Shown here piece after piece: positions 30,688 to 64,000 of a stretch of 64,000 bases of DNA (its first letter is position 1; each line of letters starts with the position of its first letter). The position numbers were made by a program, and so were the translations under genes. The stretch is taken from positions 3,782,001-3,846,000 of the forward strand of contig OZ218953.1 of the NCBI GenBank assembly GCA_965112735.1, read 5' to 3'. The stretch comes from Phaeosaccion multiseriatum (lineage: Eukaryota > Protista > Ochrophyta, other classes). A model generated the notes under the pieces. It was not told the DNA's origin and made no database searches. It saw nothing but the letters and a program-made list of their open reading frames with translations.

Positions 30688-31017
30688 TGCACTCCCCCTC
30701 AACCCACCTCTCCCAATCCTGAAGTGAGTCCTGTTCTATGGCTTGCTCCTTGAGTCACAACGAGGCATTGTGCTCTTGAGGGGAAGGCAAGAAGTAAAAA
30801 AAAACTCCTCTCCTCTCCAACCAACCGCCATTCATCTCCCGGGCGCTTAATCTACTCTACAGTGTTCCTTCTCCCTCACCTATGTTCTATCCTCAAGTCT
30901 AGGGGTGGGGATAGGAAGGACGAGGAGAAAGGGACCCAGAGACTCATTTGATTTGGATGTGTGGTGCCATCCGGTGCCATCCGATACCATGCCGTTACTC
31001 TGTGGATATTAATTACC

Positions 31018-34000
31018 ATGTCAAGCCCTGGAGCTTCGCCCCGGAGCAAGGGCAACATGGAGGAGACAGTCAAGGTGCGCTTGTCTCATGTCTCGCTCGT
31101 CACTCACAGAAGGGCAAGGCAAGTCAACCTTTACTCTCCTCCGTCTCTCGCTTTTCTCTCACAGGTGTACTGCAGGTTAAGGCCCTTTATGCACGTCGGG
31201 AGCGGGGAAGCAACAGACGAGCAGCTCCGGCGGGACACCGGGAACTGCTGTGTGGATGGAGACTCAGGCACGGGCGTTGTCACGTACCGAAGCAGCGGCA
31301 AGTCCTCAGGGGATGGAAGCAGCAGATCTGCAGCTGCTGCTGCAGCTGCAGCGCCCATGCAGCTAAAATTGACGGGCTTCCTTCCACCAGATTGCGAGCA
31401 AGAAACAGTATATGAAGCCGTGGGTAGTGGAGTTGTAGACGGCGTGGTCCAGGGATTCAACGGGACTATCTTTGCCTACGGTCAGACGGGAAGTGGAAAG
31501 ACTTTCACGATGAGAGGGGAAGGCATGGGCGGTGTGTCCAAGCAGGCCGGCATCATTCCTCGCAGCATCGATCATCTCTTTCGTGGTCTGACGGCGGTGC
31601 CTAGATCCGAGTTCACAATCAAGATATCTTACCTTCAGGTGACGGAGTAAATTGAACTCTAGCCTGTGTCTTGGTGTGTGTCTTACTGTGTCTTGATCCC
31701 CTTATCCTCGACCCCTTCACAACCCCCCCCCCCCCCCATCAGATCTACTGTGAGATTCTCAGCGATCTTCTGCAGCCCGAGAACTCGAACCTCTCCATCA
31801 GGCAGAAGAGCAACGGCGAGGTGTATGTTGAAGGACTGACAAAAGCCCCAGTGGGCAGTCTGGAGCAGGCCATGCAGCTGCTGGCCAGCGGAGACACTAA
31901 TCGCAACACTGCCGCCACTCTCCTGAATGCGCACAGCAGCAGATCCCATGCAGCTGTGTTGGTGCACGTGGAGCAGAGAGTGGCGGTGATGAAGGATGTC
32001 AAGCCCACTATCATCAGGAGCACGCTAGTCCTCGTTGATCTGGCGGGCAGCGAGCGAGCGAAGCAGTCGGGCGTTCAGTACCAAGTAAGGGAAGAAGAAG
32101 GGAAGAATGGGAGGTGGGAGAGAGAAACGTACTGTGTCCAAAGCAAGGAGAGAAGAAGGTGTATTTTGTCCCCTTCTCTTCTCTACTTTCTCTAACCTGC
32201 CCCCCCCCCTCTCTCACACGCTCGCTTCAATTCCCTCTTTCCACCAGCGCTTCGAGGAGATGAAGGCCATCAATCTGAGTCTTTCCGCCCTGGGCAACTG
32301 CGTCGCAGCCCTTTCCAAGGCGGCGGCAGCGGGGGGAGCAGGGCGCAAGCCGCACATCCCGTACAGAGACAGCAAACTGACGCGCCTGCTTCAGCAGTCT
32401 CTGGGAGGAAATGCTCGGACCGCACTGGTGGTGACGGTGCCTCAGGAGAGCGATGATGAGAGAGGTGAGACGCGCTCCACACTGAAATTCGCACAGAGGG
32501 CCTTGTCGGTCAAGGTGTGTGCACAAGTCAGCGTGGAGGCCGACTATCAGCACCTCTACAGCTTGATACAGGTGAGAGGAAGAGGCAATAGAAGGAAGAG
32601 GAGGTGGCGATTGGAGGTGAAGCTGCAGGAAGAGGATGGGGGAGTGTAAGGAAAAACCCGGCAATGAGCTGTGCGGGTGGCAAAGTTCCTCCTCCATTTT
32701 CGACCTTTGTCCGTCCTGACGTGCCTCCCTCCTCCTTGATCTCTCTCTCTCTCTCTCTCTTTGTCGTCCGCAGAAAGAGCTGGACGCCAAGACAGAGGAG
32801 GCAGCTCAGCTCGGTATCGAGAATGCACGAGTGCAGAAGAAACTGGACCATATGGAGGCGGAGACGGGCGATGCGCGAAGGGCCCTCGCGCAGATGCAGG
32901 TGCAGCTGGAGAGTGAGCGAGAAGGCTTTTCGACAACACTTGCCTTGCTGGAGAATGCCGAGAAGGAAGAGCAGCAGGAGGCAGCCAGCAAAGGGCTGGA
33001 CTCAGAGGCGCAGCAAGAGGGGGTGGGTGATGGCGGTGCTACTGGCAGCGGTCGGAGGGGCAGTGCGAATGGCGGTGGTAACGCAACGAGTGCGGCGGCA
33101 GCGGCGGCGGCAGTAGAAGCGGCCACAGACATGTGGAAAAAGGAGGTGCAGCTTCTCAAGGAGACACACGCCAAGGAGCTCGAGGAGGTTAAGAGAAAGA
33201 CTGAGGACCGACTGGGCAGGTACAGGGCGAGCGCCAAGGCCGCTAGCGAGGAGTGGAGCACCAGCGAGGCCGAGCTCAGTCGGGAGCGGGAAGCGCATCT
33301 TCAGTCGCTCAAGGAGTACCGGGAAGCGCAGAAGAGGCTGAGAGCCAATGTACGTTCTAGGACTCCTCCGCGCCAGGCTTACGTTGCTTCCCACACTTAG
33401 TGCTTGGGTGGGTTGAGTCAAGCGTATGGGGGGGGGCGGCGATTCCTGATCAGGTTGTTCCGCGTGTGTGTCCTGTCTCTCTCGCCTCCTCTTTGTGTCT
33501 CCAATCCCAGGACAAGGAGACGAGCGAGCGATTCAGTGAGCTGCACGCAGAGCTCTCTGAGAAAGGCGCGGAGATTGAGAATCTCGTGGAGAAAGACGCG
33601 CAACGAGAGCGACGAGTGGCAGAGCTGCAGACTCAGCTTGAGGTCAGTGAAGAGCAGTAGCTAGCGGGGCGTCTTTCTAGAGGACAAGGTGGTATGCTCG
33701 TCTTTCTAGAGGAGGAGGGCCGTGCGAGACGTATTTTTGAGGGCTTGAGAGCGAGAGCCGAGGTAGTAGCGAGACCGCAGTTGGTCTTGGCGCAAGGAAG
33801 GGGCTGACTTGGCGAGTCTCAATTCCATTTCTTCTGTGTGTCTGTGCAACTTGACATTGCAGGAAGCGAAAGAGAAGGCTGGGCTGGATTGGGACCCCAG
33901 CGATTGGGTACACCGGGACCAGGTGAGCGAGATGGAGAGGCTCTTCAAGCTCACCATCGACAAGCTGTCCAAGAGGGTGGAGTCCCTCGAGTCCGGCAAG

Positions 34001-34591
34001 GCAGGAGCAGGAAGCGCAGATCCCCCCCCCAGGATACCGAGCAGCAGCGCTCCCCGCTCGCCGCGCATGTCGAAGGACGCAGTGCAGTTGGGAAGTCATG
34101 CTCTTTTAGCGCAATTGTCCAAAGGGACTGCCGGCGCGGGGGGCGAAGGGGGCTTGCACGTTTCCAATAAGCATGTCGCCCAGCGGCGATCGACGAGTAG
34201 TAGCCGCACCGGCGTGAGCGCCGGTATGAAGAGAGACCTTCACGTCGAAGTCGGTGCGGACGCCACTAGCAGCACCAGCAGTAGCAGCAGCAGCGGCGGC
34301 GCCAAGGGGAAAATCCCAAGGAGTCCCCCAGGAGGGGGTACAGGATTCGCCTCCAGGGAGAGCAAGACGGGCGCAAGGGTAGCCGGCGGGTCGAGCCGGG
34401 GAATCGCGCGCTCTCTTTCAACGTCGGCATCTCCCAGTAGCGGGAGTGTGCCGGCTTCTTTGTCCGTCAACGAGTTGAGGAGCGGGAGCAGCAGCAGCCG
34501 GAGCACCACGAAGGCCCGTATCGAGCCTGGAGGGCTGCGAAGTAGCTCTGGAATCAATGGAGCCAAGAGCAGCCAAGCGCGGAAGCTTTAG
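31018..34591 (+). CDS. N-terminal-motor kinesin (ARK-like motor/neck) with a coiled coil and S/G-rich tail
   Basis: Motifs VYCRLRP, GFNGTIFAYGQTGSGKT, NAHSSRSH, DLAGSER, INLSLSALGNCV, HIPYRDSKLTRLL, GETRSTLKFAQRA..EADY. Confidence 0.95.
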
Positions 34592-34797
34592 CGGTTGTTT
34601 CCGAAATTGCTTCTTTGGACATGCTTGAGGGTCTGCGGTGCCAGAGGTGGCCCCTGATGATCGGTGCCCTCTAACGCCAGCAGAAGACACGAGAAGAGGG
34701 TCGTTTACATATATAAAACCGCGTTGGTTTAGTAAATGGTGGCCCACCCGCCCAGCCAACTCCCGATTGACGTACTGCCAATCGGGGGGGGCGTAGA

Positions 34798-35568
34798 CCC
34801 GCCCAGGCTTGAAGCTCCTGCTTGACGACTTGGCTCCGCGTTTCGTCCGAGTGCAGGAGCCTGTGGGGCAATGCGAACTACACCCCCAATCCTTCCCGCG
34901 GGGGGGGGGCACCTACTACTGCGCCAATGGCCTCTCTCTCCTTCTGCAACCAACCAAGGAAAGGGGAACATGACTCGCCCCCCCGGGGGAAGGAGTCGGG
35001 GTGTAGTCCGCATTGCCCCAGGCTCCTCCACCCGGACGCAGCGCGGAGCAAAGCCGTCCAGCAGGACCTTCAAGCCTGGGTTGACATAGACCCGCCCAGG
35101 CGTGAAGGTCCTGCTGGACGGCTTGGCTCCGCGCCGCGTCCGGGTGCAGGAGCCTGGGGCAATGTGAACTACACCCCCAATCCTTCCCGCGGGGGGGGGC
35201 ACCTACTACTGCGCCAATGGCCTCTCTCTCCTTCTGCAACCAACCAAGGAATGGGGAACATGACTCTCCCCCCCCGGGGGAAGGAGTCGGGGTGTAGTCC
35301 GCATTGCCCCAGGCTCCTGCACTCGGACGCAGCGCGGAGCCAAGCCGTCCAGCAGGACCTTCAAGCCTGGGCGGGGGAGCCGATTGACGTAGACCCGCCC
35401 AGGCTTGAAGGTCCTGCTGGACTACTTGGCTCCACGTTTCGTCCGAGTGCAGGAGCCTGGGGCAATGGGGACAACACCCCGACTCCTTCCCCCGGGGGGG
35501 CGAGTCATGTTCCCCTTTCCTTAGTTGGTTGCAGAAGGAGAGAGAGGCCATTGGCGCAGGAGTAGGTG
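34798..35568. repeat. Nested palindromic (foldback) array A-B-A'-A-B-A'-A-B'
   Basis: A (~110 bp) at 34798-34909, 35091-35199 and 35394-35500; its reverse complement at 34978-35080 and 35268-35375; B (~68 bp) at 34910-34977 and 35200-35267; reverse complement of B at 35501-35568. Confidence 0.93.
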
Positions 35569-35938
35569 GACTACTCCCATTGTACAATTCAAATCCATAC
35601 TTCTAGTCCTTCGAGTCTATACTTCGTACCCTTTGCCCTCACCACCATGCGCAGCAACAAACGGAGAGAGTTTCGGAGAAAGTTCCCGCCGCTCCAACAG
35701 TGGATGAATGGCCCCGAAATCAAGTCTCCGATATATACATACACCTCTCTCCACACCCCCAACCCTCCCTGTACACGACCTTTGCAGAGCAGAACGGAAG
35801 CCCTCTCGCGATCCTGCGCAGAGATGAGATCCCTCACTACAAGAGGTTTTAGGTCTTGTTCACCTTCCCACTTCCCCGTCCGGTCACCGTTCGTCCCCTC
35901 CTCAGCAGCAGCTCTCAGCTGGGTCCCACCGAAGGTGC

Positions 35939-37504
35939 TCAGAAGAGCAGAAGGCAGAGTATAACGAAGGAACCCAAGCCGAGCAACAAGTGAGACAGGA
36001 ATGCCTGTTGCGCCTCCTCCGGAGAAGGGGGCTCGCCCACCGCTGGCGGTGGAGCGCTGCTTCGGCTGTGGGTAAAGTTTTGCTGTTGCGGGTACGAAAC
36101 AACGGAAGGGGAGGGGTGGCGGAGCACCGAAGGAAACGTACACGTGAGTGAGTGAGAGGGGAATGAGGGGGGGTGAGAGGAGAGGGTTCAGTAGCGCCAC
36201 AGAGTGAGGGCCTGGATCCTGAGAGGGTGTGATGGAGGACAATTGACCTGCAAGACACCCTGGCGAGAGGCCAAAAGGGAGCCACAGGGGGGAGTGGCGT
36301 AGAAGATGTGGTTGGTTGCTACAGAGAGGGAATCATCACAGACTTTGTCCAGAACTTACGAATTGGAGGCCAAAGAGTGAAGGGAAGAAGCCGAAGCCGG
36401 CAGAGAATTGTACGAAAGCGTTTCCGTCCAGTCCTGCATCAGTGAGATTGGTGTTTGGAACAAAAGGGGGAGTAAAAAGAGACGAGAGGCGGGGGGTGAG
36501 AAACCAACAAGATGAAAGTAATCAGACACTCAGGAGTGAGGACCAGAGGGTCAAAGCTGCCCAAAAGGCCGTACAGTAGAGGAGTCACCCCTCTTTCCCG
36601 GGTCTCTCCACCGTCCAAACTATTGATCCCCCCAGTTACGTAAGCCCCCCTCACCTTGCTGCTGCTGCTGCTGCGGCCGGGCTGCTTGCGGACGGTCGGC
36701 CGTAGGGCGGTCGGGTATCCTCTCCCTCGCGCCGCCCTCGCCTTGCTCCCCTTCCAGCTTCGTTCTGGGGTCTACATTGTCGCTGTCCTTCCCATAAAGT
36801 GGAATCACATTCTCTTTGGTAACTCCAGCCTGGCCCGGAAGCAGCGTAGCGCGGGGGGGGGGTTGGAGGGGGTTACCAGACTGGCTCCGTCAGGTACACG
36901 GTATGGTCGTGTATGAGGCAAGAGGAAGCGGGGTGACTATCGGCTGCCACGCGAGAAGGAAAGCTGATGATTCTCCCCTCTGTCTCACCTTACAGACGGG
37001 GCACTCAGTGTGGTTCGTGCTGAGCCAGCGGAACAGACACGTCCAGCAGAAGAGGTGTCCACAGCGAGTCACCACGGCATCATTGGCGCTGTCCAGGCAG
37101 ATGTTGCACTCGAAGCGAGAGTCCGCCTCTATTCGTAGGAAAGAACGATACAGGGGGAGAAGAGGGGTTAGGCTGCGTAGGGAGGGCATTCTGAGTGTTA
37201 CTCGACATCTGTGTGTGTGTGTGTTCGAGAAGTTGGCTATTGAGCTGGAACTCGGCAGGGGGTCAATACACTTCATTCCGCGAGGGTGGAACGGCGTCCT
37301 TGGACTCCACCAAGCTCTCTCCCCGGACTTACCCAAGGCTTTTCTTTCCCGAGCTGCGCAAAGCTTGCACCCCTCGGTTCCCTTTTCCAACTCCGCTGCT
37401 CCGACCCCCCCCCCACCTCCCGCGACGGGAGGGCCCACTTCTTCCACTGCCACTGCAGCAGCTCCTGCTGTTTCTGGCGCTGTTATGGTGTCCATACCCG
37501 TCAA
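35939..37504 (-). CDS. RNF5/RNF185/RMA1-type tail-anchored RING E3 ubiquitin ligase
   Basis: [49 protein letters not shown]; then [21 protein letters not shown] and C-terminal [26 protein letters not shown]. Confidence 0.93.
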
Positions 37505-37727: not shown

Positions 37728-39592
37728 ATGGCCGCTCCGCTAGGTAGCAGCGAAAACAGGCTCCTCCACGAGGTGCAAGGGAAGTTGGAGTACCAGTTCA
37801 GAAGGCCGGGGCTGCTGCTTCAGGCCTTGACGCACGGATCATTTTGCCACGAGAACCCGAACTGTCGCACGGGTGCGTGTGGTAGGCTGCAATGGTGGAG
37901 CTTCCTGCGATGGGCGCCTCCCTTCAATCTCCAGTCAGCTACCCACTCTTCCTCCTTCCGTTTCCAGCTTCCCCGGTGCACTTGACCCACAACCTCCTCG
38001 AACCCACCCCAAACTAAACCGAGCAGGCAACAACGACGAGCTGGAGTGGCTGGGTGACACCGTCCTCCAAATGGTGGTGACAAACTGGCTATTCCATGAC
38101 GTTGCGCCTCCGCGGTCCTCAGGGACCCTCTCCCAGCGGCGGCAAAAGTACACGAGCACTGGAGCTTGCATCGTGTTCGCCCAGCAGCTCGCATTGGTGA
38201 GACGGAAGGACGATGGGCCACAAGCGAAGAGGGTTCCTTGCGGAGGGCCTTTTCAACTGAGCTGCCAATGTGCCGTCTCTCTTCTCTCTAACCCTGCTGT
38301 ATGGTGTGCCAACTAAAGATGATATTTGCTCCACCACCGTGCATGCGCAGGCATCCTTTCTTCGTGTTGGTGTCGGCCAAGCGGTTATTGGCACTAAGGT
38401 CGAGGCCGACTGCTTCGAAGCCGTCTTAGGTAAGGAAGGGAAGGATTCCTGGCGCCCGCACGCCAACTCTCACTCGCACATTTGGCCTTTGTACGATCGA
38501 ATATAACTATCTCGATGACGCTTAACAGGAGCCCTGTATCTAGACAGCGGTGGTTTGAGTGCCATCGACAGACTGATGGCCCACCTCATACCGGGCTTTG
38601 CCAAGCCTGAGCCACAGCCCCCCGTCCGCTGGCGCCCCCGCCCCGCCAAAAAAACACCAGCGGCGGAGGAGGTGAGCAGCAGTGCGAGAGCCAGTAGCGC
38701 CGGGAGCATCGCAGAGGCAAAGGAGCAGGAGCAGGCCCCCCCTCCCCCCCCTCGTGCTGCTGACGGCGGAGCGCCCTCCCTGCCGCCTGTCGAGTGGCCG
38801 AGGCGCGTGCTGCACCACACACAGAGGCTCAGCACGGCCCTGAGGCGGCTCCCCAAGGAAGGAGGCCCGGAAGCCGCGCTGGACGAGCCGGACTCTCTGG
38901 GGGAGGTGGAAGGGGCCGTTGCGGATCTGCAGACCGCCTTGACCGGCCTGTATGTTGTCTGTTTGCAGGATGGACAGCTCAGCCACGGCCTGCCGCAATT
39001 CGCCGAGTGCTTCGGGGCGGAAGTGCAGCAGTGGCTGCAACACGTATTGGCACCTGACGGAGGAAGCATCAGCCACCGCCAACAGCAGAGAAATGGCCCT
39101 CATGTAACGGGAGAGGCACTTGTGCAGCAAGTACTGCGCGAACAAGTGAACATTCGTAAGGCCTTCCCTAACGCGCCCCTGGGGGCGGAGAAGCTCATCA
39201 TGGCGGTGAGTCAGTCGGGTCCCGGGCCAGAGGCGTCAGACCATCAGCGGACGAGAGGAGGGCGTAGGCAAGGCGGCGCCTCCATTGACATACGCTCTCC
39301 ACTCTCTCCCCCCCCTCCGTGTACCTCTCTCTAGGTGGTGCGTGTTCCACAGCGGGAGCGTGAAGGGCTGTTCGCTGCGCTTGACTTCGTCAAGACCAGT
39401 CTAGTAGTTCAACCCAGGGGAGGAAGGGGAGAAGGCCCGGCAGACGAGGAGTGGCAATGGCGCTGGCCGCCGAGAATAGCTTCGCTCCCTGCTGTGGCGT
39501 CGCTCGAGTCCTCCTTGCGCCAAACCCTTGAGGCGGGCGCCACCTGCCTCCTGTTCGCCCCCCCTTTAGCTCGTGCCCTTCGTCTCCAATAG
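37728..39592 (+). CDS. Ribonuclease III-domain protein (single catalytic domain, unrecognised C-terminal region; 5 exons)
   Basis: Motifs LEYQFRRPGLLLQALTHGSF, NNDELEWLGDTVL, GTLSQRRQ and ADCFEAVLGALYLD, joined across canonical GT-AG introns. Confidence 0.9.
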
Positions 39593-43835: not shown

Positions 43836-43907
<72 letters not shown>

Positions 43908-44557
43908 TAAGTCAGTGGGGGGGGGCTTGGGGTGTTGGAGGGGCCGCCGCGCCGCTGCTGCTTCTGCTGCTCAGGCTGCCGCTGTTCTACCTGGTTGTAG
44001 CAGCGTAACATGTGTCAAAGACACCACCGACACCACCGTCCACCCCACCTACCTTGAGCGGGCGGATCTGCTGCAGCCGGGCCTCGTACTCCATCCACCT
44101 CCGGTCGGCGAGGGCCACCAGCGTCCCGTCCGGCAGGCGACCCTTTTCGCCTTGGAAGGTGTCGAAGATGACTGCCACGAAGAGGTTCGTGAGGTAGAAA
44201 CCTATGGGGGAGGTATGGGGCGTTGATGCAGGAAAGGAAGGGGGGATAGGGGGGATGGGCAGTTATGTAATCCCCCGAGCGATCAGTTGAGATGGGTGTG
44301 TTGGTTGCTCAGCTGGGAAGTATGGCAAAGGGGTGTGCAGAGTATGGCTGTGATTGGCCATGCCCATTCATCCCCATCGACGTCAGCAGGCACTCGACTT
44401 TCGCGGACGGGCACGCGCTTGCTTACCGAAAGCGAAGAGACCGAAGAAGAAGTACCAAAAGGAGAGCAAGTTGAAGTTGATTTTCTGTGTAGGGTAGGGA
44501 AGGGTCAAGCGTGCAACGCCATAACGTCAATGAACGTCAGCGTTGGGCGTCAAGACG

Positions 44558-45527: not shown

Positions 45528-48500
45528 TGTATATACGCACGCGTCTGTCCTGTCCTTACCATGCTGGTGAGGGCCATGACCGACTTTCGGAGCGAGATGA
45601 GAAGCTCCTGGAGGCTCTCGAGTCGATTGATAATCCGCAGGGGCCGCAGCGCCTGAGGAGGGAGGGAGGGAGGGAGAAGGTTTGGCGCTGGAGGAGATGG
45701 GAATGGGGCCCAGCAGGGAGCCCAGGGATTCGACGCAAAGGGCTTTGTCCTGACGTCAGGGGCTTCGTCGCTTCTTCTTGTTCGCCGGTCCTCGTTTGGT
45801 TGACGCTTCGAACACGCCTCTCTTTGCCCCCCCACCCCTCCGTCTCTCCATCTCTCTTCTCTCTCTTCTCTCTCTTCTCTCTCTCTCACGGACTTACACT
45901 CTCTCTCTTTCCCTTCCTTTCTCTGTCTCTCTCTCTCCCTCGTGCTCCTCTCTCACCTTGAGTAAGTCGAGCACGCTGCTGACTGCTCGAGGGGCCGACC
46001 CCGCTTCCAGGGCATAGGAAACAGCACTCACCACTGCTATGAAGCAGTCGAGCTGATTCCAATGCTCCCTGTGGTCGTGAAAGTAGGGTAGGTCAGCAGG
46101 AAGGAGGAAGGGAGGAAGGGCGGGAGGGGAGGAGGGGGGGGTGAGAGGCTTACTCTCCTCGGATACACAGCACAACGCAGCACAGCATAGCAAGGGGGAA
46201 GCTAGGGGTCTTGCTGACTCCCGCCCTGGCCGCTTCCCTCGGGCGGACGTCTGGTCAGTTTGCAGTTTGCGTGCGTGAAGGTGACAGCTTGGGTCCATGT
46301 GAGTGTGGCCTGGACCAACACGCACAGCAACACGCTCTGGATTGGAGTACCTGAAGAAGCCGTTGGGGCCTTGCCAGACTCCGTGAGCGGCGACCTTGAC
46401 GCCCACCTCGCCAATGAAGATGAGGCAAAAGAAGAGCTCCATCATGGAGTACGCGTTGGTGACGCCCGTGGTTTCCGCCGGCTCCAGCACCATGAACAGG
46501 GTCGATGAAGCCACGGCAACGAACATGGCCTTCTCGAAGAGAGGATGTGTCGCCAGGGTAAGGAAGGACTGCCCGGAGGAAGGAAGGAAGGAAGAAAGGA
46601 AGGAAGGAAGGAAGGAAGGAAGGAAGGAAGGAAGGAAGGAAGGAAGGAAGGAAGGAAGGAAGGAAGGAAGGAAGGAAGGAAGGAAGGAAGGAAGGAAGGA
46701 AGGAAGGAAGGAAGGAAGGAAGGAAGGAAGGAAGGAAGGAAGGAAGGAAGGAAGGAAGGAAGGAAGGAAGGAAGGAAGGAAGGAAGGAAGGAAGGAAGGA
46801 AGGAAGGAAGGAAGGAAGGAAGGAAAGAAGGAAGGAAGACGAGGAGGGATTTAGTTCCCACGTCCGTCCTCCATTCGCGGAGAAAGTATGGAGAATGGAG
46901 CTACCCCTTCTCTGCATCATCGATGTGCATGCAGTCCTGTCAGCACACCCACCCCCTCACCACCCCACCCATCGCCCCACAGCCTGTCAAGCACACGCAC
47001 ACACATCTGGCTCTGACTCTCTTCGCGAGGGGGTGATTTATTGCAATGGAACGTAACGCAACGTCACGCATCGTACTTTTCTCGTCTTGCTCTGACTCGC
47101 GACCCATTTTTTCGCCTCGGGCCCCTCCGTGGCGACTCTCTCCCCAAAGACGAAGTCCACGTTTCGAATAATCCAATCCCAGCAGCCCCCTCGGGTTTCC
47201 TCGAGCTCAGCATCGGGTTGCCTCTGAACGACATCGTTGATGCGCGAAGGGAGGGTGCTGAAGGAATCACGGCGCACTGACGTATGCGTGTGTAGCGCCA
47301 CCGCCGTGCGCTGATATGGACAACCGTGTCAAACAAGCGCAGTTCAATTTCGAGACGGTGGAGGTTAGGATTATTTCCAGAGGGTCGAAGGGTCGACTCC
47401 CTGACCAATTCAATGCCGTGATCGATGCTCAGACTCATCGATACTAACTGACTTACTGAACCGCTAGCGCTCTCTCTCTCAACCCCCCTTCCCCGTTGTT
47501 GCAGATGGGTTGACGCGTCTTACCTGATACGACCCATCAAACTCACTATCGTAGGTGAGCGTGCTTCCATCACGTGTGGGTGTAGCCCTCGCCGTCCTGC
47601 GGCTCTCAGCGCGATCCAATTCCGGCAATTCCACTTCGGAGCCTTGGCCTTTAGACAGGGGCTTCGGAAAGCTGCCGCCGCGGAGGAGTGGAGGCGGAGG
47701 GAGGGAACGGAAAGATGAGGCAAAGCACACCAAGAGAAAAACCGCGATGAGCAAAGCGTTTTTTCTCCCTCCGAGAGCAGCTTTTCCAGCAGGCTTTGTG
47801 TACTATACCCCACCTGCCCCCCCCCCTTGACCGGCTCACCTCTGCAACAGCCAGTTGGGTAAGCCCTTGCCCTTCTCAGCTTCGCCAGCGTCTCCGAGCT
47901 TCGCAGTCGACCCTCTGCACCCTCTCACTCCTCTCGACCCTCTTCCGCCCTCCGCGCTGATCAACTCCGAGCTGCCACCACCACCACCACCATCACCATC
48001 ACCATCACCATCACCATCACCATCACCATCACCATCACCATCGTCGGTGCTGACGCCACGACTATCCGGGCTCGCGAACCGTGTCCTTTCCGCTCGCAGC
48101 AGCCTCCCTGCGGCCCTCCCGGCGGCCCTGCCCGCGCTACCCACTGCTGCCTCCTCCTCCTCCTCCTCCTTCCCCTCCTCCTCCTCCTGCTGCCGGACCA
48201 TGTTGTAGTAGAGAATATACAGCGCCTGTCGCTTGAACCCCTTCTTGTAGATGCTAATCATCTGTAGGGTGAAGGCAGGCAAATGGGAATAGAGGAAGGC
48301 GGAGGGAGGGGAAGGGAGGGGGGAGGAGGTGGAAGGAAGGTCGTGCGAGGCGGTCGGTTGGCCAGTCGGCTCAACAAATGGCGGCCAAACAGGTAGCATC
48401 CGTGGACGAGCTAAGCTAAGCGACTGCATGTATCACGCCGGTAGTACCGTACCTGAAGCTTGAGCGCTTGGCGGCGGTGTTTGAGGTTGAGCTCGTCACC

Positions 48501-63027: not shown

Positions 63028-63091
<64 letters not shown>

Positions 63092-63208
63092 CATATGTAT
63101 AATATATATATATTATATATTATATCTTATATATATAATTTTTATATATATAATATATATATAATATATATATATAAAAAATTATATATATATTATATAT
63201 ATATATCA
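63028..63208. repeat. (TA)n and degenerate AT-only tract
   Basis: About 180 bp of almost pure A/T in a GC-rich window. Confidence 0.92.
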
Positions 63209-64000
63209 TAGGGCCACCCGTCGTGCTCTCTACCTCAGAAAAAGACGGGCCATACACCCTCTAGCGGCTTCAGGCGTCGCGTGTGTGCGTCTCCTCAGCG
63301 CGGCGGACCGCGGGTGCGGGAGTCAAGAGCGTCGGGTGTAGGAACGTCGCGCCCTATTCTCTCTCGTCCTACCTGACCAGCGCTTGCCCAGCGAGGGGAA
63401 TGCTGCTCGTCCAACGACCAGTCTACGGGCGCAGATGCCTCTTCCCCTTGTCCCTTCAAAATTGCGGCAGAGCTGGATCTGGAACTTCGTCTCAGTCTCT
63501 TGCTGGTTACCTCTATTCAAAGTCCATGCTTGTCGCAGAAGTCTTCCTCGTCCGTACTCAGTGCCTTTCTGAAGAAGAGCGGCTGGTCGGGATGCTTGGA
63601 GCTGCGTACTGAGAAGGCAAACTCGAATCCTGCCCCTGCCCAGCCCTCACGAACGCCTCGCTCACTCACGTTCTCTCCTTTGTGCCTGTTGCAAACGGGG
63701 GAACGAAAATGTAACAAACAACTTAGATCAGTGGGTCCCGGGAATTGCACTGGGCACTTCGCTCAGAAGAAGCGCAGGTCGTGTGGAGCAGCATGGATGA
63801 TATGATTGGGTACTCACGGGGTTTTGGCTGAGAGATTCGCCTGGCCCAGCTGCAGGTCCAGAGCCTCCCGAGACGCCGCACCCTTCTTACTCTTTGTACT
63901 GGCCTTTGTGCTCGCCCGTGAAGGGGTCTTGGGTGTCTTAGGGTCCATGACGACGCTGTGAAGCTCTTCAGCTCATAGAATAAACCAGCTTCCCAGCGCC

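Follow-up and report, generated by a model that had tools for sequence, protein, structure and literature searches.

The window analysed here, a 64,000-nt stretch of Phaeosaccion multiseriatum DNA, contains at positions 34762-35568 a nested palindromic array that we interpret, with a probability of roughly 0.55, as a real amplification of a gene fragment into palindromes, non-coding and confined to one locus. As judged by alignment, the core and inner arm of its repeat unit share homology with the 5' leader found in a small family of genes. This homology is new here, and it is what identifies the array as an amplified gene fragment. We take the array to be a young, neutrally drifting by-product and a potential source of hairpin RNA, not a proven regulator.

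The anatomy of the array is real. It comprises two A-B-A' units followed by an A-B(inverted) unit, with a period of 291-303 bp, and TRF reports a period of 291, 2.4 copies, and 89% matches. The arms are 103-108 nt long with 91-93% complementarity. Positions 34910-35080 pair with 35398-35568 (171 nt at 93%), and further inverted pairs are 108 nt and 107 nt long (both at 93%) and 103 nt long (91%). The inverted pairs and the TRF layout thus bear out an earlier note on this DNA, which described tandem A-B-A' units of which the third is inverted and truncated. No other long inverted repeat of complex sequence is present in the 64-kb window. The parts of the array are as follows.

34762-34786, no strand: small hairpin at the left array edge, CCGATTGACGTA followed by its own local inverted copy, with an 8-bp stem
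34788-34906, + strand: arm A1, with an L-type inner end and a 2-nt insertion and three variants common to A3
34907-34977, + strand: core B1, forward, containing GCGCCAATGGCC and homologous to the gene-family 5' leader
34978-35080, - strand: arm A1', R-type, with leader homology over its first ~30 nt
35081-35094, no strand: loop 1, GTTGACATAGACCC, equal to loop 2 except for one 13-nt deletion difference
35095-35197, + strand: arm A2, L-type, carrying the bases of the facing A1' at alignment columns 93-115 (putative conversion tract)
35198-35267, + strand: core B2, forward, 97.1% identical to B1
35268-35375, - strand: arm A2', R-type, 97.1% identical to A1'
35376-35393, no strand: loop 2, with the 10-bp inverted repeat CCTGGGCGGG / CCCGCCCAGG on either side
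35394-35500, + strand: arm A3, with an R-type inner end that is an inverted copy of A'
35501-35568, - strand: core B3, inverted; the array stops exactly at the outer end of B

The small hairpin at the left edge has a minimum free energy (MFE) of -20 kcal/mol. Its motif is reused by the loops, as the earlier note had observed: CCGATTGACGTA occurs at 34763 and at 35381 (35381-35392), and the variant GTTGACATA at 35081. Each palindrome centre has an asymmetric spacer of 14-18 nt, and loop orientation is the same at all three centres. Runs of G9-10 and C7G5 border the core, and a 17-nt local palindrome lies at the B/A' junction. Around B2, palindromes of the form A'-loop-A (220-233 bp) appear as direct repeats; the units on the outside are incomplete. 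The array starts exactly at a palindrome centre and finishes exactly at the end of B. A search of the flanks for older, decayed units left no unit homology beyond 34741 or 35568, and an apparent fourth 17-mer copy at 35753 was rejected, its score lying inside the shuffle range. A 247-aa ORF running through the array (34822-35565) has no relatives in a collection of 5.8 billion proteins, from which it is also absent as a window-encoded protein; we regard it as an open frame that arose by chance in repeated, GC-rich DNA.

In searches of the 67-Mb genome, the full unit and the outer arm match only their own locus, and no part of the arms matches any other sequence. Core B, in contrast to the arms, has relatives. 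When B was searched genome-wide with two sequence-only profile models (R1 and R2), only four further partial copies were recovered, all of them gene leaders. Together with ~30 nt of adjoining arm (~100 nt in all), B is a diverged copy of the 5' leader or first exon of a small gene family. Core and inner arm are ~85% identical to C3:3919801-3919903 and C12:91710-91806, while the weaker matches found by model R2, at C16:1651527-1651634 (E 1.7e-17) and C12:1298878-1298987 (E 1.9e-15), are ~65-70% identical to the array. Exact words shared with the four leader loci are 31 (C3), 20 (C12), 20 (C16), and 17 nt long. All four loci run on into a (CAG)n run, a GTGAG splice donor, and a conserved T-rich intron end, and two of the four are followed, ~375 nt downstream, by an 822-aa ORF that has a GC3 of 0.73 and a handful of diverged paralogues. 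No Pfam family was found in the ORFs around the C3 and C12 leader copies and no database relatives of the 822-aa ORF, which we therefore regard as an orphan. To within a few nucleotides, B's outer end matches the point from which the family's 5' modules can be aligned; in the second C12 copy a TATATAC box lies ~30 nt upstream of this point, which is thus plausibly a transcription start. For the outer 75 nt of the arm, no significant homology emerged, either to exon 1 of the family or to its upstream region.

The array could have been built in four steps from a block (X) of ~175 nt that consists of core B and the right arm, its first ~100 nt being the diverged copy of the leader. X would have been copied in inverted orientation around a pre-existing short inverted repeat, CCTGGGCGGG N18 CCCGCCCAGG, yielding the palindrome with 175-nt arms at 35200-35568. 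The arm alone would then have been copied, inverted, to the other side of B to give A-B-A', and the resulting 291-bp unit would later have been duplicated in tandem. Finally, arm-to-arm gene conversion may have made the copies mosaic. Both the order and the mechanism are reconstructions; the order is the most parsimonious one given the identities among copies, although conversion could blur it. Small hairpins and the G9-10 and C7G5 runs mark the junctions, which fits fold-back or template-switch replication errors, and the amplification by template switching suggested in the earlier note fits as an origin, given the 10-bp inverted repeat around the 18-nt loop 2 and the homopolymer and hairpin junctions. 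Comparable cases are short-inverted-repeat fold-back priming, known from Tetrahymena rDNA and from palindromic amplification in yeast and mammals, and inverted duplications of the MMBIR/FoSTeS type. The array resembles such cases in the asymmetric 14-18-nt spacer within a 10-bp inverted repeat at its centres, in its junctions at homopolymers or small hairpins, and in its mixture of inverted and direct copies. However, the known cases usually span kilobases to megabases, whereas the array is sub-kilobase and its mechanism is read from the end product.

Identities among the copies range from 86% to 97%, with X1 and X2 97.1% identical and X and X3rc 93-94% identical, and the units differ by 3-13%. 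The arms are mosaic, with three partitions over eight informative sites, and several of the differences are length changes in G/C homopolymers. The claim that arms facing each other across the loops carry matched variants stands for a single compensatory site (alignment column 115) among ~25 variable arm sites, but not for the remainder, as the same facing arms contain 7-9 other mismatches. The compensatory site sits within a tract of at least 23 nt (columns 93-115) in which A2 has the bases of A1', a pattern that suggests DNA gene conversion and that conversion would explain better than a functional hairpin RNA. Even as a neutral by-product the array is useful: it documents the seeding of nested palindromes by short inverted repeats and G/C runs and the conversion of facing arms by one another, and it cautions against reading RNA-level selection into every "compensatory" variant of a DNA palindrome.

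Pfam searches of individual exons of the neighbouring genes identified kinesin motor exons (+, 30961-32649) and a RING exon (-, 36890-37504), confirming the location of the array between convergent kinesin and RING genes. Two features adjoin the array.

33809-34591, + strand: probable last kinesin coding exon, a charged, helical-looking stretch followed by a Ser-rich tail, with the stop at 34589-34591
35942-37504, - strand: RING-finger gene, with the RING exon at 36890-37504, the next at ~36623-36889, and a hydrophobic C-terminal piece extending to 35942

The exon at 33809-34591 probably belongs to the kinesin gene, and the exon chain and stop position of the RING gene are predicted likewise. 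A structure search on the RING gene, considered as possibly RNF5-like, returned only generic RING matches, so this putative name rests on the motif that follows the RING. Protein-level look-ups of the kinesin-tail ORF and neighbouring ORFs, aimed at other assemblies or transcripts, gave no matches, and a search of metagenome contigs for one exact 29-mer of B gave none either. The array begins ~170 nt past the kinesin stop, ends ~370 nt past the probable RING-gene stop, and occupies ~60% of the stop-to-stop gap of ~1.35 kb. This position makes transcription of the array plausible and, as the array fills most of the gap, read-through from either strand would fold. The poly(A) regions of the two genes could correspond to the AT-rich patches at 34705-34740 and 35733-35746, in which case the array would lie just outside both mRNAs.

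The region is strongly folded on both strands, in agreement with the structure that the earlier note had proposed to check by RNA folding. The whole region folds to -687 kcal/mol (+) and -708 kcal/mol (-), with z-scores of -47 and -41; 0 of 20 shuffles folded as well, and the folds lie 41-47 SD below the shuffles. The predicted hairpin with ~175-bp arms at 35200-35568 was recovered as described (175-nt arms, 164/175 Watson-Crick pairs, MFE -369.5 kcal/mol). Near-perfect duplexes of at least 100 bp are therefore available, the arms being 103-175 nt long and 91-94% paired, with perfect stems of up to 36-86 bp. Each hairpin contains 1-2 G:U mismatches versus 2-4 A:C and 4-8 transversion mismatches; mainly transversions and with no excess of G:U, the mismatches give no indication that RNA structure has been under selection.

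If present in a 3'UTR or in read-through RNA from either strand, the array would form near-perfect duplexes of 100-175 bp, and the flipped third core would place leader-derived B inside a duplex. The genome encodes genes that could act on such RNA: a Piwi domain at C13:419.6-420.9k, an RdRP at C1:3767-3770k, and RNase III domains at three loci (on C1, on C2, and in the window at 38038-38199, 2.2 kb from the array). Given these Argonaute, RdRP, and RNase III genes, the duplex RNA would be expected to be diced, although we infer both its transcription and its dicing. The gene set is comparable to that of Ectocarpus, for which one Dicer, one Argonaute, and two RdRP are reported (PMC4513859). The suggestion of an endogenous siRNA or hairpin-RNA source is plausible and gains some support from the structure, the position between convergent genes, the RNAi genes, and the leader-homologous duplex. 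We thus consider the array a real locus and a candidate hairpin-RNA source of a known kind.

Whether that source is functional is a separate matter. The array could be a functional hairpin-RNA gene, producing endo-siRNAs or a proto-miRNA, whose siRNAs silence the leader-sharing family in trans. Such a gene would account for the long near-perfect duplexes and for a flipped third core that makes leader-derived B double-stranded, and also in its favour are the exact words that the array has in common with the leaders (31 nt in C3, 20 nt in C12 and C16); tandem hairpins with target-homologous arms are typical of known hpRNA loci (PMC10317233), and the RNAi gene set is present. However, the mismatches show no sign of pairing selection, the single compensatory site is better explained by conversion, homology to the putative targets extends over only ~100 nt at 85% (~65-70% for C16 and the second C12 copy), and all Rfam families fall below threshold. 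We regard this reading as rather unlikely. Slightly more doubtful is the fuller version, in which a tandem hpRNA gene was born by inverted duplication of the orphan-family leader, the flipped core exists in order to make leader dsRNA, and the family is silenced in trans. The structure might instead act on its neighbours, separating the convergent kinesin and RING genes as a barrier or fail-safe terminator; an RNase III could cleave hairpins in read-through RNA, or cruciform or G-run DNA could stall polymerases. This would suit an array that takes up so much of the gap and contains G9-10 and C7G5 runs, in a genome with RNase III genes, one of them nearby. Yet the array is young and decaying, and no other gene pair of the window has a structure like it, so that it is not a general device; we consider a spacer function very improbable.

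The remaining alternatives concern the origin of the array as DNA. The earlier note had proposed counting copies of the arms and core and looking for target-site duplications as a check on a MITE-like or foldback element, and this reading is not supported: no dispersed arm copies exist, no target-site duplication is visible at the array, no convincing one of 4-5 bp can be made out, and no direct repeat adjoins it. The tips match no multi-copy sequence such as an LTR end in the same genome searches, and the array does not end in inverted repeats, the left tip (CCGATTGACG...) and the right tip (...GGAGTAGGTGG) not being complementary. As with foldback transposons and MITEs, the array is small, non-coding, dominated by palindromes, and composed of units in mixed orientation that allow a palindrome-core-palindrome reading; unlike them, it is single-copy, lacks terminal inverted repeats of the whole element and a target-site duplication, and has tips unlike any repeat. 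The uniqueness of the arms across 67 Mb and the restriction of B's further matches to the four leader copies speak against a MITE or foldback element. A one-off insertion of a non-autonomous element of either type would fit the precise edges, from palindrome centre to end of B, but it is improbable in view of the same features, and because the units differ by 3-13%, sister copies of equal age should still be detectable. Marginally less probable is a reverse-transcriptase snap-back, in which a leader-family mRNA was copied into cDNA over its first ~175 nt and this cDNA folded back, switched templates repeatedly, and was integrated. The outer end of B, where the array stops exactly, does approximate the start of the family's 5' module and hence a plausible transcription start. 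However, classic snap-back would put the palindrome centres at the mRNA 5' end, whereas here they sit at the fragment's inner (3') end; poly(A), a primer-binding site, and a target-site duplication are all lacking; exon 1 of the family shows no detectable homology to the outer 75 nt of the arm; and the idea is entirely inferential. A tRNA scan of 33.5-36.8 kb, bearing on a primer-binding or tRNA-like origin of the loops, found nothing. Palindromes are also a known long-read artefact, and a foldback chimeric read or mis-collapsed repeat might produce differences in G/C homopolymer length such as those seen here. Many of the differences are, however, substitutions in consistent subsets (the three partitions over eight informative sites), and copies only 86%-97% identical contrast with the near-identity expected of an artefactual foldback after polishing; an assembly error is accordingly very unlikely indeed. 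Least credible is an invertible DNA switch, in which recombination between arms flips core B. Inverted repeats of ~105 nt do flank B in units 1 and 2, and the third core is inverted along with the inner-arm variants. Unit 3, however, lacks a right arm, so B3 is not flanked by inverted repeats, and its core-plus-arm differs by 6-7% from the other two, indicating an old fixed copy and not a switch in its other state. No recombinase match was found among the flanking ORFs scanned, the genes identified being kinesin, RING, and RNase III, and B has no evident promoter or coding content for its orientation to control.

Comparable arrays are found among the Drosophila hpRNA loci that yield endo-siRNAs, including the hp-CG4068 tandem cluster, hp-pncr009/Oak, and the tHMG-derived hpRNAs (PMC10317233, PMC10292708). 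Both have long near-perfect inverted repeats in tandem hairpin units, arms homologous to fragments of coding genes (including 5' regions), and a young, fast-evolving character. The array, as a candidate locus of this kind, differs in belonging to a stramenopile alga, in the shortness of its homology to putative targets (~100 nt, 65-85%), and in a nested layout with one flipped core that is more intricate than a simple hairpin repeat. It also recalls the inverted-duplication model for the birth of plant MIR genes (Allen et al. 2004; updated in PMC3237417), in which inverted duplication of a gene fragment gives a fold-back with arms still similar to the founder family; with arms of 100-175 nt that are 91-94% paired, however, the array would correspond at most to a proto-miRNA or siRNA stage. 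Should small RNAs arise here, the locus would offer a clear, datable birth of a hairpin-RNA gene from a fragment of its likely target, in a lineage of brown-algal relatives where the origins of small-RNA genes are little known, with its founder family still readable alongside both the inverted and the later tandem copies. Silencing in trans, if true, would make it an algal counterpart of the arms races between Drosophila hpRNAs and their targets.

A microRNA gene was considered and rejected. An Rfam scan of the array found no family at threshold, the best match being to mir-5879 (47.5 bits versus a gathering score of 97), with mir-498 and mir-324 also far below threshold, and a miRNA precursor would be expected to be a short hairpin, which these arms far exceed in length. 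The palindrome tips attract these sub-threshold miRNA-model matches on both strands, as any perfect hairpin would.

The palindromic array at window positions 34762–35568 is real: at this single locus a gene-leader fragment has been amplified into palindromes, most likely by fold-back or template-switch duplication with later arm-to-arm conversion. Repeat and inverted-pair analysis agrees with the layout described in the earlier note, in which arms A and A' flank a core B and the third unit is truncated with an inverted core:

34788–34906, arm A1
34907–34977, core B1
34978–35080, arm A1'
35081–35094, loop 1, 14 nt
35095–35197, arm A2
35198–35267, core B2
35268–35375, arm A2'
35376–35393, loop 2, 18 nt
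35394–35500, arm A3
35501–35568, core B3, inverted

Tandem Repeats Finder gives a 291-bp period with 2.4 copies and 89% matches, and of the inverted pairs, those of 171, 108, and 107 nt match at 93% and that of 103 nt at 91%. Homology among the units extends from 34762 on the left to 35568 on the right; an apparent fourth copy of a 17-mer at 35753 was rejected, its score being within chance. Runs of G9–10 and C7G5 flank B, and a 17-nt local palindrome lies at the B/A' junction. The leftmost loop contains a 21-nt insertion in which the loop motif recurs inverted, producing the small hairpin at 34762–34786. The motif TGAC(G/A)TA, which we take to resemble a CRE/bZIP half-site, occurs in one orientation in all three palindrome centres (35081–35094, 35376–35393, and 34763–34774).

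The hairpin at 35200–35568 is Watson-Crick paired at 164 of 175 positions and has a fold energy of -369.5 kcal/mol, while the whole array region folds at -687 kcal/mol (+ strand) and -708 kcal/mol (- strand), 47 and 41 SD, respectively, below dinucleotide shuffles. Three folds compete: A with A' across the core, A' with A across the short loops, and X (core B plus the right arm, ~175 nt) with its inverted copy, forming 171–175-nt arms. Because their energies per nucleotide are similar, these alternatives are mutually exclusive, as had been claimed. No further long inverted repeats of complex sequence were found elsewhere in the 64-kb window. An AT-rich palindromic microsatellite lies at 63056–63210 (63.1 kb), and a (GA)n run (43838–43917) and a (TC)n-rich run (45876–45958), 2 kb apart, score as an inverted repeat of low complexity only.

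Core B together with the neighbouring ~30 nt of right-arm sequence (~100 nt in all) recurs at 84–85% identity at C3:3919801–3919903 and C12:91710–91806 (contigs of the same assembly), within an inverted segmental duplicate of 96.7% identity. More distant copies at C16:1651527–1651634 and C12:1298878–1298987 were found with a sequence-only profile of B. Their E-values are 7e-4 and 4e-3 under profile model R1, and 1.7e-17 and 1.9e-15 under model R2, the latter being partly circular since both copies went into building R2. Scoring covered 150 of the ~27,000 first-look candidates, so the copy count is a lower bound. Exact words common to B and the leader copies reach 31 nt (C3), 20 nt (C12), and 20 nt (C16). 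The larger regions concerned are:

C3:3916682–3920761 and C12:90842–94886, 4.1-kb inverted segmental duplicate
C16:1651248–1651909, C16 module locus
C12:1298598–1299266, second C12 module locus

All four leader loci contain the block ACTACTG..GCGCCAATGGCCTCTCTCTC.., a (CAG)n run within 100–250 nt downstream, and then a CAG|GTGAG donor followed by an intron with a conserved T-rich/CACAC tract at its end. Based on these shared features, the B-like block is predicted to open a paralogous 5' module (leader/first exon), with a start codon possibly inside CCAATGGCC. In the C3/C12 pair an 822-aa open frame follows ~375 nt downstream of the module; its composition is coding-like (GC3 0.73) and it contains three 92-aa tandem repeats. 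This frame matches no Pfam family and has no relatives in a large protein collection; a few diverged paralogues occur in the same genome (contigs C1, C6, C5, and C2). Searched against the ~8.6 kb that follow the C16 and second C12 copies, it gave no match; the sequence there appears to differ from that of the C3/C12 pair, and the 5' module may be a first exon or promoter cassette common to the four loci. The array copy has lost the frame of the leader family through a 4-nt indel and altered C-run lengths, so it is a non-coding fragment. No homologue of the arm's outer 75 nt or of the loops was detected.

Gapped identity is 97.1% between the X copies of units 1 and 2 and 93.0–93.7% between either of these and the inverted copy of unit 3; A2 is 92.5% identical to the reverse complement of A2', and A1 is 91.6% identical to A2. 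The arm alignment contains about 25 variable columns, eight of them informative, in three partitions. At four inner-arm sites {A1, A2} stand apart from {A3, A1', A2'}, whose R-type also occurs in leader-family copies; A3-B3 is thus simply an inverted copy of B-A'. Three sites separate {A1, A3} from the rest, and a single site, column 115, unites {A2, A1'}. Of the matched variants reported in facing arms, that of A2/A1' is column 115; the A2'/A3 match there is just the ancestral state, and A2' and A3 differ from each other at all three sites of the {A1, A3} partition. At columns 93, 106, 108, and 115, A2 agrees with the facing A1' and not with its tandem twin A1, a pattern explained by one conversion tract, 23 nt or longer, spanning the 14-nt loop.

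The simplest order would begin with inverted duplication of X about CCTGGGCGGG / CCCGCCCAGG, a short inverted repeat that still borders loop 2, followed by placement of an inverted copy of the arm at the other side of B and then tandem duplication of the 291-bp unit, at whose junction loop 1 carries a 13-nt deletion. Homopolymer runs and local palindromes are the kinds of sites used in fold-back priming and template switching, and we infer that these occurred at the G9–10 and C7G5 runs and the 17-nt B/A' palindrome.

An assembly artefact is unlikely, as the copies differ by many substitutions common to consistent subsets. In the 67-Mb, 22-contig assembly (window at C4:3782001–3846000) the full unit matches only its own locus, as does the outer arm alone, and a 29-mer of B was absent from metagenome contigs. 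The array ends are not inverted repeats of one another and no target-site duplication was seen around them. A MITE or foldback element, which the earlier note had proposed, is excluded as an ordinary family on these grounds. The array likewise lacks the marks of a hairpin-ended mini retroelement, namely multiple copies, LTR-like tips, and a 4–5-bp duplication. The invertible segment also suggested there is unlikely: the inverted core lacks the right arm and is 6–7% diverged, and the nearby ORFs scanned gave no recombinase match. One observation suggests a reverse-transcriptase snap-back product of a leader-family mRNA 5' end, namely that the outer end of B is where leader-family modules start aligning; in the second C12 copy this point follows a TATATAC box by ~30 nt. 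Classic snap-back, however, would put the palindrome centres at the opposite end of the fragment, and the array bears no further retro signature.

The array lies between genes arranged tail to tail:

30961–32649, + strand, kinesin motor exons
33809–34591, open frame, a helical-looking stretch and then a Ser-rich tail
34705–34740, AT-rich patch
35733–35746, AT-rich patch
36889–36623, - strand frame past the RING exon, then a hydrophobic C-terminal piece to 35942
36890–37504, - strand, RING exon
37729–39590, + strand, small spliced RNase III gene, divergent from the RING gene

The frame at 33809–34591 is probably the last kinesin exon, with its stop 170 nt ahead of the array; it has no matches in the large protein collection. 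The RING coding sequence probably stops ~370 nt away, since the - strand frames end at 35942. With these predicted stops, the convergent stop codons would be ~1.35 kb apart and the array would take up about 60% of that gap. The AT-rich patches may be poly(A) regions, which would place the array just outside both mRNAs. The array could conceivably act as a terminator or barrier separating the two genes, a role that nothing supports. A 247-aa ORF through the array, without a match in the large protein collection, was dismissed as a chance ORF.

In every possible hairpin the mismatches are predominantly of the transversion type, which accounts for 4–8 per hairpin, against 1–2 G:U pairs on + strand RNA and 2–4 on - strand RNA. 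Neither strand therefore shows a wobble excess, and the arm alignment has a single compensatory column. Rfam returned only sub-threshold miRNA-model matches on both strands of the palindrome tips, and ARAGORN found nothing in the array region. The arms look like neutrally decaying copies, now and then homogenised by DNA conversion. This pattern argues against an old, structure-constrained RNA and would be compatible with siRNA production, which needs no conservation.

The array is a credible candidate hairpin-RNA source of a known kind. By predicted folding, a transcript of either strand that crosses the array would form 100–175-bp duplexes with perfect stems of 22–86 bp, and the flipped third core places B inside the duplex instead of the loop. 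Gene-fragment hairpins have the same birth route in the plant inverted-duplication model. Like Drosophila hpRNA loci, which are tandem hairpins with arms from target genes including 5' regions (PMC10317233), the array combines tandem hairpins with arm sequence from a gene 5' region. It also displays two of their defining features, a long duplex and arms homologous to a gene family, and hpRNA loci would be its closest functional analogue.

The RNase III gene, 2.2 kb from the array, has exon 1 from the ATG at 37729 and exon 2 from near 38028 (signature NNDELEWLGD). It encodes a single RNase III domain (Pfam PF00636, E 5e-8) with no double-stranded-RNA-binding domain detected, and among solved structures it best matches bacterial RNase III, Drosha, and DCL3. 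It is among only three RNase III-domain loci in the genome, which also has one Piwi-domain and one RdRP locus, a set comparable to that of Ectocarpus (one Dicer, one Argonaute, and two RdRP; PMC4513859). Nuclear 18S rRNA genes in this genome are dispersed, not in one tandem array (C4:4312659–5380535, on the contig holding the window, and C3:3183741–3185548), with ten full copies spaced roughly 28–370 kb apart in both orientations.
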